Assembly: GCA_013416795.1 (NCBI GenBank)
Contig: RQSC01000028.1
Span: forward strand, 153,275-217,274
Direction: 5' to 3'
DNA length: 64,000 bases
From: Prasinococcaceae sp. CCMP 1430
Lineage: Eukaryota > Plantae > Prasinodermophyta
Under the pieces are notes generated by a model. It was not told the DNA's origin, searched no databases, and saw only the letters and a program-made list of their open reading frames with translations. This document shows positions 44,500-47,764 of the stretch, piece after piece. The translations under genes were made by a program, and so were the position numbers. Every line of letters begins with the position of its first letter. The first letter of the stretch is position 1.

Positions 44500-45023
44500 T
44501 CAGACGTCGTCGACTGCGCGCGCGCGAGAGAGCCCGCCGATGTCAGCAGCGGCGCGACAGGACGCACAAACGCACGCGAGTGTATGCCCGCGCGCACGTG
44601 CGGCATCACGCCCGCGCACCTGTCACGCTGGGGTCCCTGAAGCCGGCGGCGCGTAGCCTCTCCGCGAGCTGTTCTGCCGACGTGAAGGAGTTGGTGACCG
44701 CTGCCTGCACCTCCTTGCACCCCTCGTGCTCGGCGCCCTTGTGCCGCAGGCACCATGCCTTGGGCGCGTGTGATACCAGGCGCTTGAGCTCCTCCTCGCC
44801 GTCGTACCCGACGCGCACGATGTAGTTGCGCCGCCGGTGTTGCTTCCAGTACTCGATGATCCCGCTCGCCACGCCCTCGCCGGCCGCGCGCGACCGCTCC
44901 CGCGAGCACTCCGGCTCGGCGTCCATAAAGTACGCCTCCACCAGCACCGCCGCGCCCACGTCGCGCGTAACGCCGCCGAGGACGCCCAAATCCTGAGTGC
45001 CCGAGAATGGGCGCGTTCGCGTG

Positions 45024-45057
<34 letters not shown>

Positions 45058-46137
45058 GCCGGCGGCTCGGTCGCATGTAGGCGCGTACGCGCCGCACGCG
45101 CGGTGACTCTGACCCCCGCGCACGCGTGTAAAGAGGCTGGAATCCAGCACGCACCTGCCACTTGACGCCGCGGTCCTCGAGCCTCAGCGCGTTCACGACG
45201 CCTGACTGCACTGAGTGCGCGAGTGAGATATCCCTCTCTGTGGCGTCGACGTCCACCAGCGTCTCGGTGCCCTGCGAGCCGCCGTTGTGGCCATTGTGGT
45301 GGCAAGATATGAAGATGTCGTGGCCGCTCGCACGCTTACCGCGCTCGGGCAGCCACGGCGGCAGGCGGTAGCCGCGCGGGTACTCGAACATCTGCACCGT
45401 CGCCCCGTGGTTCTCGAGGACCGTCTTGATTGATGCCCGCGCGCGCGCCCGTGTCAGCAATGCTCGCCCCACGCCGGGACCGGGCCTCCGCGCGCGGGGG
45501 CGCGCGCGCGATTCGCAGCAGCCGCGGTTGGGCGCACCTTGAGCTCTGTCGCCATTTCCTTATTGAGCTCGAGCTCCGTATAGTCCTTGTGCACGAAGCC
45601 CACCTCATAGCCGAGCGGGTGGGCGCCGTGGCCCACGTCGAGCGCCACCTTGGCGCCGGCGAGCTGCCGCGAACGCAGCTTGCGCAGCCGGTAGCGCGCC
45701 CGGCTGATCTCCCCGAAGAAACCAGCGCACGGCGACACGCCGTTGGCGCGCTGCCAGCGCACCACCGCGGCGCGTGTGCGCTCGTCGTACTTGCCAGAGC
45801 TCGCCAGCCGTACGCTTCGCCGGAGCTGCTGCTGCTGCCGCTGCTGGCGTCGACGCCGCTCCTCGGGCGCCGCGTCGCGCCCGCCCGCCTGCTCGCCGCC
45901 GAGGTTATCTGCGATTGGGCTCCGGTAGTCGCTCTCTGTGTCGAAGCACCCCTCCCTCGCCAGGTAGCGCTGCAGGCACGCCACGTCCTTGCCGTGGTCT
46001 CCCACGGTGAGGTCGCGCGTGAACTCGCAGTACTCATCATCGTCGTGGGCGTCGCCACCGTCGCCTTCGCCATCGTCGTTCCCGCAATTGACGGCGGCCG
46101 ACGCGAGGTCGCAGAGGAAGCCAGGCTCGAGCGACAT
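44500..46137 (-). CDS. N-acetylmuramoyl-L-alanine amidase (Amidase_3) with N-terminal PG_binding_1-like domain and C-terminal SPOR-like domain
   Basis: PG-binding: RDLTVGDHGKDVACLQRYL...GKYDERTRAAVVRWQRANGV. Amidase: VALDVGHG, TELELN, IFISCHHNG and AVLVEAYFM. Exons 46137-45538, 45424-45155, 44992-44620, 44513-44500 give 418 aa; the frame is open upstream into the gap. Confidence 0.88.
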
Positions 46138-46245
46138 GGCGCGTGACGCGCCACGCCCGCCCGACGCCGCCTCCGCCGCGGCGGCCAGCGAGCGAGCGAG
46201 CAGCGGATGACGGGGCCGATCGGGCGGGTGCGCGTCCGTGCGGGC

Positions 46246-46619
46246 NNNNNNNNNNNNNNNNNNNNNNNNNNNNNNNNNNNNNNNNNNNNNNNNNNNNNNN
46301 NNNNNNNNNNNNNNNNNNNNNNNNNNNNNNNNNNNNNNNNNNNNNNNNNNNNNNNNNNNNNNNNNNNNNNNNNNNNNNNNNNNNNNNNNNNNNNNNNNNN
46401 NNNNNNNNNNNNNNNNNNNNNNNNNNNNNNNNNNNNNNNNNNNNNNNNNNNNNNNNNNNNNNNNNNNNNNNNNNNNNNNNNNNNNNNNNNNNNNNNNNNN
46501 NNNNNNNNNNNNNNNNNNNNNNNNNNNNNNNNNNNNNNNNNNNNNNNNNNNNNNNNNNNNNNNNNNNNNNNNNNNNNNNNNNNNNNNNNNNNNNNNNNNN
46601 NNNNNNNNNNNNNNNNNNN
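46246..46619. other. Assembly gap (N run)
   Basis: Continuous Ns. Confidence 1.
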
Positions 46620-46686
46620 GCCGTGCCGCCGCGCGCCGCCGCGCCGCGTCGCCGCATTGCCGGCCGCGCCGGCGCTGGAGGCCGCC

Positions 46687-47586
46687 ATGGGTGGCAAGTA
46701 CGCGGCGTGGGAGGCTGGCGAGATCACGCCCGAGGCGGTGCTGGCGCACAAGGCGCCCACCGAGGGCTTCTTGTGCCCGCTCGCAGCCAACAAGTACGGA
46801 ATTGACTTCCGCGAGTTCGAAATCAAGGACTACGACAAGGTGAGCTCCAGCGCCTCCGGCACGTGTGCATCCTCCGGTCTGGCCGCGCAGTGTGGTGTGA
46901 ACGCGTGTGCGCATGTGTGTGCAGGCGTGCGTGCACCAGCCGCTCCCGCGCCCCCTCTCCTGCTCCCACTTTCCTGCTCCCGAGCTGACGGCGCGCTCGA
47001 CCCGATCCGCCGGCCGGGCTGCGCCCCGCGCCCGCACCACGCAGGCACTCTCCCTCTTCCACGTGACGCGTCCAGCGGATGCGCCTGCCATCGACGTCAC
47101 GCAGGTGCCAGAGCACATGGAAGACCAGGTGCGCTCTATCCAGTACACATTTCCGAAGGCCTTCTTCGACATGGAGACGATAAAGGTGCGCCAGCTGCCC
47201 TCGCTCCCGAGCGCTGTTCGCGTCCTGGCGAGGAGCCCCCTGCTGACGATGCCCGCCCTCCACACGCACACGCACGCGCACGCGCCTCCCCCGCGATGCA
47301 GACGAGCCTCGTGTTTTCCGTGGGGTCCGAGCCCGTGCCCAGCCTGCGCATGATCGAGCGGCACTACTTCAAGGGCGAGCTGCAGCGCTCGTACGACTTC
47401 ACCTTTGGGTTCTGCATCCCGGGCTCGACGAACAGCTGGGAGGCCGTGTACCCCGTGCCGCAGATGTCTGCGGCGCAAAAGGAGGATATGCTGAACTGCC
47501 CCCACGAGACCGCGTCAGACTCGTTCTACTTTGTTGGTGACACGCTCATCATGCACAACAAGGCGTCGTACGCGTACTCCGGCTGA
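46687..47586 (+). CDS. UNC119: UNC119 (PDE-delta fold myristoyl-cargo carrier)
   Basis: Motifs FLCPLAANKYGIDFREFEIKD, RSIQYTFP, LRMIERHYFKGEL.RSYDFTFGFCIPGSTNSWE and SDSFYFVGDTLIMHNKASYAY. Two GT-AG introns. Confidence 0.95.
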   Translation: MGGKYAAWEAGEITPEAVLAHKAPTEGFLCPLAANKYGIDFREFEIKDYDKVSSSASGTCASSGLAAQCGVNACAHVCAGVRAPAAPAPPLLLPLSCSRADGALDPIRRPGCAPRPHHAGTLPLPRDASSGCACHRRHAGARAHGRPGALYPVHISEGLLRHGDDKGAPAALAPERCSRPGEEPPADDARPPHAHARARASPAMQTSLVFSVGSEPVPSLRMIERHYFKGELQRSYDFTFGFCIPGSTNSWEAVYPVPQMSAAQKEDMLNCPHETASDSFYFVGDTLIMHNKASYAYSG

Positions 47587-47764
47587 GCGCGCTCGCAGGG
47601 CGCGTGTGCGCTGAGAGCGCGAGGCGACTAAATCGTTGCGGTCCGCACATTCTCAACCGTTGCAAGCGCGCGAGAGAGAGCATGTGGGACAGCACTGCAC
47701 ATATATTACAGGTGGTGCGCGCGCGCGGGCGGGGGGGAGGGATTGCGGGGTCGACACTTGCGTG

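Follow-up and report, generated by a model that had tools for sequence, protein, structure and literature searches.

What does a green alga do with an enzyme that takes bacterial cell wall apart? The question is raised by a gene on the minus strand of a 64,000-nucleotide (nt) stretch of DNA from Prasinococcaceae sp. CCMP 1430 (contig RQSC01000028.1 of assembly GCA_013416795.1, positions 153,275 to 217,274 of the forward strand; hereafter the window, to which all unprefixed coordinates refer). A first-pass annotation, made from the letters alone, had described at 44500-46245 an intron-containing nuclear gene for a peptidoglycan amidase of the Amidase_3 family, and had offered two readings of it: a plastid-division murein amidase, or a domesticated antibacterial or bacterivory lysin. 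We find a three-exon gene for an amidase with an intact active site, placed between two predicted wall-binding modules. Our preferred reading, to which we give a probability of roughly 0.55, is that of an uninhibited, wall-anchored amidase that acts on the alga's own plastid peptidoglycan and gets there without the usual N-terminal targeting peptide. What is new is the three-domain arrangement of a familiar enzyme family, its place in a eukaryotic nucleus, and its restriction to a few deep green-algal lineages.

A three-exon nuclear gene under purifying selection

Between 44606 and 46137 the minus-strand reading frame is broken twice, and splicing restores it to give a 418-residue product. The gene is laid out as follows, from its 5' end.

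46138-46245, minus strand: probable 5' untranslated region; the frame is open, without coding signature
45538-46137, minus strand: exon 1, with the ATG at 46137, a 34-residue acidic leader, the PG_binding_1 domain and the start of Amidase_3
45697-46035, minus strand: PG_binding_1 domain (residues 35-147), with a lineage-specific insert in one loop
45815-45949, minus strand: the loop insert, low-complexity, about 45 residues, probably translated, less probably an in-frame GT..AG intron
45425-45537, minus strand: intron 1, 113 nt, GTGCGC..AG, of a length not divisible by three
45155-45424, minus strand: exon 2, the Amidase_3 core, with Zn ligand H242 at 45299-45301
44993-45154, minus strand: intron 2, 162 nt, GTGCGT..AG, with a (CA)n microsatellite at 45028-45055
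44606-44992, minus strand: exon 3, with the end of Amidase_3, catalytic E309 (44936-44938), the SPOR-type domain and a TGA stop
44609-44842, minus strand: C-terminal domain, assigned with moderate confidence to the SPOR type, predicted beta-alpha-beta-beta-alpha-beta, with invariant C371 and C382

The end of exon 1 encodes the first strand and helix of Amidase_3, including the Zn ligands H170 and E188, and reading through intron 1 meets a stop at 45454-45456. Both splice junctions (ELK/TVLENHG at intron 1 and GVKWQ/DLGVLGG at intron 2) align without gaps with intronless homologues, and the gene model is independently supported by this collinearity. The neighbouring plus-strand gene (UNC119-like by eye) has similar donor sites. 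The canonical introns of the first-pass annotation therefore stand, but its four exons do not, three being better supported. A fourth exon would have to come from an in-frame intron at 45815-45949. No aligned homologue has this insert; its GC (guanine plus cytosine) content by codon position is 0.80/0.53/0.84, an exon-like periodicity that neither true intron displays, and all of the population variants within it (3/3) are synonymous. Because of the coding-type periodicity and the synonymous-only variants, the stretch was taken as translated. On these patterns it is probably a lineage-specific loop, with splicing as a minor alternative, and the fourth exon was rejected on the same grounds. A 3' mini-exon from a donor near 44618 is not needed either, since the end of the protein matches the ends of its homologues.

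Tara Oceans metagenome scaffolds carry the locus repeatedly (41 index blocks list them; 24 of the listed contigs were read), and seven scaffolds, 96-99.6% identical, were aligned with the window to give eight sequences. Fourteen of the 18 variable sites in the exons were found at codon position 3, four at position 1 and none at position 2. Counted by codon, 15 variants were synonymous and three non-synonymous, all three of the latter lying in the N-terminal leader, and exon 2 did not vary at all among the eight sequences. Real insertions and deletions were confined to the microsatellite of intron 2 (2, 14, 18, 26 and 28 nt) or to the 3' flank. This pattern of substitutions and indels shows that the protein is under purifying selection in the wild population and that the introns are non-coding.

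GC content stays between 56 and 74% throughout the window, and the flanking genes bear introns. The gene itself, with two spliceosomal introns, eukaryotic neighbours of the same GC content and a recurrent Tara locus, is thus an intron-containing nuclear gene as had been proposed, and the argument that its introns speak against contamination holds.

As a separate observation, the (CA)n/(GT)n microsatellite of intron 2 (45028-45055) differs in length by 2-28 nt among ocean populations and may be of use as a strain marker in metagenomes.

An intact active site in a compact catalytic domain

Pfam was run on each exon separately (cut-offs: PG_binding_1, 23 bits; Amidase_3, 27 bits; SPOR, 21 bits). 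Exon 2 alone matched Amidase_3 (PF01520) with 40.1 bits, above the cut-off, and full-length homologues scored 69-84 bits. The Zn ligands H170 (DVGHG), E188 (TELELN) and H242 (SCHHN) and the catalytic E309 (LVEAYF) are all present, as had been read from the sequence. None of 27 aligned relatives, algal and bacterial, departs from these four residues, which also line up with their counterparts in the solved amidase 4rn7. The chemistry, zinc-dependent cleavage of the N-acetylmuramic acid (MurNAc)-L-Ala amide bond, is secure by homology. Orthology to a named bacterial amidase was rejected, no equivalog model in NCBIfam coming near its cut-off.

The structure model that was used for the catalytic domain is that of the closest full-length relative (P0041, 62% identical over the amidase domain), not of the window's own protein. 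The model has a predicted local distance difference test (pLDDT) score of 90.7, and its 34 best matches among solved structures are all Amidase_3 enzymes (E down to 6.6e-13). The compact amidases of 175-186 residues (4rn7, CwlV, Nostoc AmiC2 and LytH) were fitted with template modelling (TM) scores of 0.82-0.85 of the target, and AmiA and AmiB, which are longer (197-228 residues) and carry a regulatory helix, were fitted more poorly (TM 0.66-0.74). The catalytic domain of the algal protein measures about 179 residues, with 67 residues from H242 to E309. Because of this length and spacing, and because the compact enzymes fit best, there would be no room for an auto-inhibitory helix. The enzyme is probably not self-inhibited, as judged from domain length and fit rather than from coordinates.

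Two predicted wall-binding modules and invariant cysteine pairs

The N-terminal domain of PG_binding_1 type that had been noticed by eye was recovered by Pfam (PF01471) with 25.4 bits in the window, above the cut-off of 23, and with 24.6-46.4 bits in the homologues, to whose PG_binding_1 domains it aligns. For the C-terminal domain, the Pfam SPOR model (PF05036; cut-off 21) fell short of its threshold both on exon 3 (20.2 bits) and on the domain taken by itself (17.0 bits), and passed it on the relative P0019 (21.7 bits). SPOR was the top Pfam family in 9/9 family members (best E 3.3e-06), the match spanning half of a pseudo-symmetric domain. An AlphaFold2 model of the C-terminal 78 residues (mean pLDDT 81.4) has the order beta-alpha-beta-beta-alpha-beta. 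With this model Foldseek ranked the SPOR domain of CwlC (1x60) first (TM 0.62, 27% identity). A search independent of Foldseek (VIA) again placed 1x60 first (Z 8.4, root-mean-square deviation 2.5, 71 of 78 residues), and also returned the SPOR domains of RlpA (Z 7.4) and FtsN (Z 6.0). Common small folds also score at such Z values, and the fold evidence alone is moderate; reinforced by the Pfam top-family result, it lets us assign the domain to the SPOR type with moderate confidence, in agreement with the SPOR-like segment of the first-pass annotation. SPOR domains prefer glycan already stripped of peptides.

Two pairs of cysteines are invariant in the family, C37/C54 in the first domain and C371/C382 flanking the hairpin of the SPOR-type domain. 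Their conservation gives a hint of an oxidising destination rather than the cytosol.

A small algal family

A word-based search yielded six clusters of full-length relatives, and a profile built from the six was scored against 1.84 billion representatives, with 35,369 matches at E ≤0.001. Among the best 150 of these 35,369, only four clusters (at 50% identity) have all three domains. These four scored 497-653 bits and the next match 284 bits, and the C-terminal domain (profile positions beyond ~326) was matched by none of the other 146 among the matches listed. Named members come from Prasinococcus capsulatus, Mesostigma viride and Picocystis, the last, whose cluster is the abundant one, being named from the contig L003, on which an asparagine synthase clusters at 90% identity with Picocystis sp. 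ML; a further algal carrier is the contig L007. The surroundings of the gene are those of compact eukaryotic genomes in both contigs, with F-box, RbcX and GH2 genes in Picocystis and an axonemal dynein chain gene in L007. The Prasinococcus and Picocystis homologues were recovered as complete transcripts of the Marine Microbial Eukaryote Transcriptome Sequencing Project (MMETSP) and are therefore expressed. Over the amidase domain the window's protein shares 62% of its residues with that of Prasinococcus, and the two are sisters in the tree described below (98/92). This relationship, a GC content of about 68% here as against the 69.8% reported for Prasinoderma coloniale (PMC7455551), and the occurrence of the locus in the open ocean would together fit a source similar to P. 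coloniale. The locus itself is represented in the protein collection by prokaryote-style metagenomic open reading frame fragments only.

In Picocystis (L003:6785-9173) the amidase gene is intronless and lies 40 bp from the start of a divergent TerC-family gene, the two forming a very tight head-to-head pair.

Bacterial origin of the family

A maximum-likelihood tree was built from 32 amidase domains, seven of them algal. The seven algal sequences are monophyletic among the bacterial amidases (99/93) and branch into Mesostigma, a group of L007, the window and Prasinococcus, and Picocystis. Such a clade is consistent with vertical inheritance of the gene since an early green alga. P0171 lies closest to the algal family, on a weakly supported node (63/66).

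P0171 (L015:243-2342; relative P0271) is a divergent Amidase_3 protein of 699 residues. It is rich in Ser and Ala at the N-terminus, may have a membrane segment, and ends in a long, acidic, disordered tail. On the same contig are long MatE and SDR genes and one of RAD50 type (LDEPTTNLD motif), and judged by these genes P0171 probably comes from another uncultured eukaryote.

The first-pass annotation had left cyanobacterial, other bacterial and phage origins to be told apart by phylogeny. The sole cyanobacterial relative recovered, a Leptolyngbya protein with Glucosaminidase and Amidase_3 domains (on L002), is not sister to the algal family. Forcing it into that position costs 15.8 log-likelihood units with p-AU = 0.074 in the approximately unbiased (AU) test, so that a cyanobacterial sister is disfavoured yet formally permitted. 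With this single relative, of another architecture and not sister, we set a cyanobacterial origin aside, although the AU test does not formally reject it. Against phage endolysins (50,697 records) the best identities were 28-32% with E no better than 2e-9, weaker than those of the bacterial metagenome relatives, and a phage origin was rejected for these weak matches at ~30% identity. By the tree and the searches the origin of the family is bacterial, and not clearly cyanobacterial or phage-derived. The bacterial relatives are mostly without taxon names, the named one being a Silvanigrellales metagenome-assembled genome (MAG).

Some of the relatives have surroundings or architectures of their own. 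The Leptolyngbya gene (L002:3564-6271) follows two small genes, one of them with a predicted membrane segment, in what may be a prophage-like lysis cassette, and a gene of unknown function lies 3' of it. A marine MAG protein of 722 residues (L001:1558-3726), in a well-supported bacterial clade, has several PG_binding_1 repeats followed by a C-terminal Amidase_3; multi-repeat proteins of this type predominate among the profile matches. In a freshwater MAG (L017:886-3909) a lytic transglycosylase with SLT and LysM domains adjoins a 302-residue Amidase_3 relative, on a contig that also has eukaryote-like domains (Fibrinogen_C and a 996-residue alpha-amylase).

The assembly gap and the N-terminus

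Upstream of the gene the assembly has a gap (46246-46619) of 374 N, and the first-pass annotation, having seen the frame stay open into it, had proposed that a transit or signal peptide might be hidden there and that the gap be closed. It was closed with a Tara scaffold (L008) whose flanks are 99.6% and 98.2% identical to the window. In place of the 374 N this scaffold (L008:233-949) gives 717 nt of ~83% GC with runs of G, and without coding signature. Six other Tara scaffolds (L009-L014) stop ~20-40 nt past 46245, which points to sequence that resists assembly.

The frame 5' of the ATG at 46137 is indeed open, for 187 codons in the bridging scaffold, with one in-frame ATG 92 codons upstream. 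At ~83% GC, however, a stop is expected about once in 150 codons by our own calculation, and every frame yields Gly, Ala, Arg and Pro; the open frame is unremarkable because such composition makes it expected by chance. In the part already present in the window (46138-46245), GC content at the three frame positions is 0.83/0.89/0.77, without coding periodicity. Within these 108 nt, three of the five variable sites fall at frame position 2, where such changes are non-synonymous, as against 0/18 in the exons (Fisher's exact test, p ~0.006, calculated by hand). The 34-residue leader that follows the ATG contains ten acidic and no basic residues (net charge -10), the reverse of what a transit peptide shows, and is without a hydrophobic signal core. 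The homologues start likewise, a short way ahead of the conserved Cys-x-Phe in the first domain, in the transcripts of Prasinococcus and Picocystis, in the model from Mesostigma and in the gene on L007. At the Picocystis locus the 127 codons upstream contain no ATG in frame, and the divergent neighbour is 40 bp away.

The openness of the frame was thus confirmed, and the targeting peptide proposed to lie behind it was not. We consider it likely, from the composition, the variants and the homologous starts, that an N-terminal targeting peptide is absent. A transit peptide hidden in the gap was accordingly set aside, given the closure, the open frame expected from GC content and the upstream variants at non-synonymous positions, with a residual doubt of about a quarter.

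On the far side of the gap, at 46686-47600 on the plus strand, lies an intron-bearing gene, UNC119-like by eye, head to head with the amidase gene. The two genes presumably share a bidirectional promoter region of ~890 nt, the closed gap being counted. UNC119 is a ciliary cargo adaptor, and this algal group is described as being without flagella.

A candidate amidase of the plastid wall

All named carriers of the family belong to lineages reported to keep plastid peptidoglycan or its genes, and many other keepers are without the family. All ten core peptidoglycan enzymes were found in Prasinoderma coloniale and in all streptophyte algae (PMC7455551), Picocystis is among the algae for which a plastid peptidoglycan layer is explicitly mentioned (10.1101/2023.05.02.539068), and ftsI/ftsW are plastid-encoded in Prasinococcales and Picocystis (PMC4194372). 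Between the two readings first offered, these reported genes favour the plastid murein amidase over the lysin, and a plastid presequence, which the former might have been expected to bring, was not found.

In the reading that we prefer, a nuclear-encoded zinc amidase would strip stem peptides off the peptidoglycan with which the alga surrounds its plastid. The PG_binding_1 domain at the N-terminus and the SPOR-type domain at the C-terminus would anchor the enzyme to the wall, and the latter may hold it where amidase action is under way, for example at a dividing or remodelling plastid wall. The presence of two wall-binding modules favours a polymeric rather than a soluble substrate. Because there would be no cleavable N-terminal targeting peptide, either delivery would have to follow a non-canonical route or the wall would have to be reachable from the cytosolic side. 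Access from the cytosol is conceivable, not proven, since peptidoglycan binders without a presequence, when expressed in the plant cytosol, were reported to decorate chloroplasts (PMC9954125). That the plastid wall is the substrate, that the enzyme acts at division or during turnover, and how it gets there are all inferences on our part.

Several observations weigh against the plastid-wall amidase. The link to plastid peptidoglycan is one of co-occurrence in a handful of lineages. When the profile was run against the 1.84 billion representatives, no member of the family came from Micromonas pusilla, mosses or glaucophytes, and because other peptidoglycan-keeping lineages are without matches, the family cannot be a universal component of the plastid wall. 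The leader is acidic (net charge -10), the closed gap adds no coding extension, and no transit or signal peptide was seen in the window with its gap closed or in Picocystis, Prasinococcus or Mesostigma. There is also no specific likeness to a cyanobacterial septal amidase, Nostoc AmiC2 not being a match at the level of sequence.

A bolder proposal, possible but in our judgement doubtful, is that this presequence-free family is the missing enzyme for splitting or remodelling plastid peptidoglycan in early-branching green algae, and that it acts from the cytosolic side. If so, the plastid wall would be accessible across or through the outer envelope, or there would be an undescribed import route into the envelope space. 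Such a route might be stabilised by disulfides at the invariant cysteine pairs.

The lack of a targeting peptide in any lineage examined would equally suit a cytosolic clean-up or recycling amidase, which would act on soluble muropeptides that escape from plastid wall turnover and would feed sugar and peptide salvage. This we regard as unlikely: the PG_binding_1 and SPOR-type modules are predicted to bind polymeric wall, the invariant cysteine pairs would be better suited to an oxidising compartment than to the cytosol, and known recycling amidases belong to other families (AmpD, of Amidase_2, and AmiE). Still less probable is a domesticated antibacterial lysin directed against phycosphere, intracellular or prey bacteria. 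The compact and apparently uninhibited catalytic domain does resemble those of autolysins and endolysins (CwlV, CD27L, 4rn7), and the order of Amidase_3 and SPOR is that of the Bacillus autolysin CwlC; however, the protein has no secretion signal peptide, phage endolysins reach no more than 28-32% identity (E 2e-9 at best), the named carriers are all algae reported to keep plastid peptidoglycan genes, and the gene has been retained across very early-diverging green-algal lineages. The carriers are small walled phototrophs, for which we know of no bacterivory. Finally, the chance is negligible that the assembly is contaminated with bacterial DNA here or that the gene is a horizontally acquired pseudogene in decay, as bacterial-type domains and an adjoining assembly gap might suggest, the domain being restored only through two spliceosomal introns, among intron-bearing eukaryotic genes of equal GC content, at a locus that recurs in Tara scaffolds under strong purifying selection with its catalytic residues intact.

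The plastid-wall amidase, if that is what the gene encodes, would bear on a process of which little has been described. Plastid peptidoglycan is now inferred in many green lineages, and the only enzyme known to cut it is DipM, from a glaucophyte and a moss. The family offers a candidate hydrolase, catalytically intact by its sequence, in the deepest green branches (Prasinodermophyta, Picocystis and Mesostigma). The missing presequence makes two matters testable, the position of the wall relative to the outer envelope and the route by which proteins reach it. The gene is also a clean case of a bacterial wall enzyme that was kept in a eukaryotic nucleus, where it gained introns and is still under selection. 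In the open-access literature no description of a green-algal Amidase_3 was found, and the Micromonas and Prasinoderma (PMC7455551) genome papers give the biosynthetic enzymes and mention no amidase.

Comparison with known systems

The closest catalytic domains outside the algae are those of bacterial proteins in which PG_binding_1 repeats or a Glucosaminidase domain accompany Amidase_3 (L001, L002 and P0220; 31-43% identity). Some of the bacterial metagenome relatives have the same order of PG_binding_1 and Amidase_3. Unlike the algal proteins, they have no SPOR-type extension among the best 150 of 35,369 matches, and they fall in separate clades of the tree.

AmiA, AmiB and AmiC, together with the cyanobacterial AmiC1 and AmiC2, share with the algal protein the Amidase_3 fold, the zinc site and the cleavage of stem peptides from glycan, by which bacterial daughter cells are separated (PMC4015805). 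In contrast to AmiA, AmiB and AmiC, the algal protein is without a Tat or Sec signal and without the AMIN domain of AmiB and AmiC (none was found by Pfam in the window's exons or in the homologues), and it would be without the auto-inhibitory helix, which in those enzymes a LytM activator releases. Nostoc AmiC2 matches the algal model in fold and not at the sequence level.

Bacillus subtilis CwlC, a sporulation-specific mother-cell amidase with C-terminal SPOR repeats, one structure of which is solved (1x60), comes nearer in layout. Its Amidase_3 domain likewise precedes the SPOR-type part, its catalytic domain is compact, and 1x60 is the best solved match of the algal C-terminal domain. CwlC, too, is not known to have a signal peptide. 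The algal protein differs from it in the added N-terminal PG_binding_1 domain and acidic leader, in its intron-bearing nuclear gene, and in sequence, with ~22-27% identity over the SPOR part.

In its proposed place of action the nearest counterpart is DipM. A search for Ami, DipM/NlpD, EnvC and LytE by Miyagishima et al. 2014 found only DipM in photosynthetic eukaryotes (PMC4015805). DipM (LysM plus LytM/M23; Cyanophora and Physcomitrium) is unrelated to the algal amidase in fold and chemistry, but like it is a nuclear-encoded enzyme of bacterial type proposed to hydrolyse plastid peptidoglycan.

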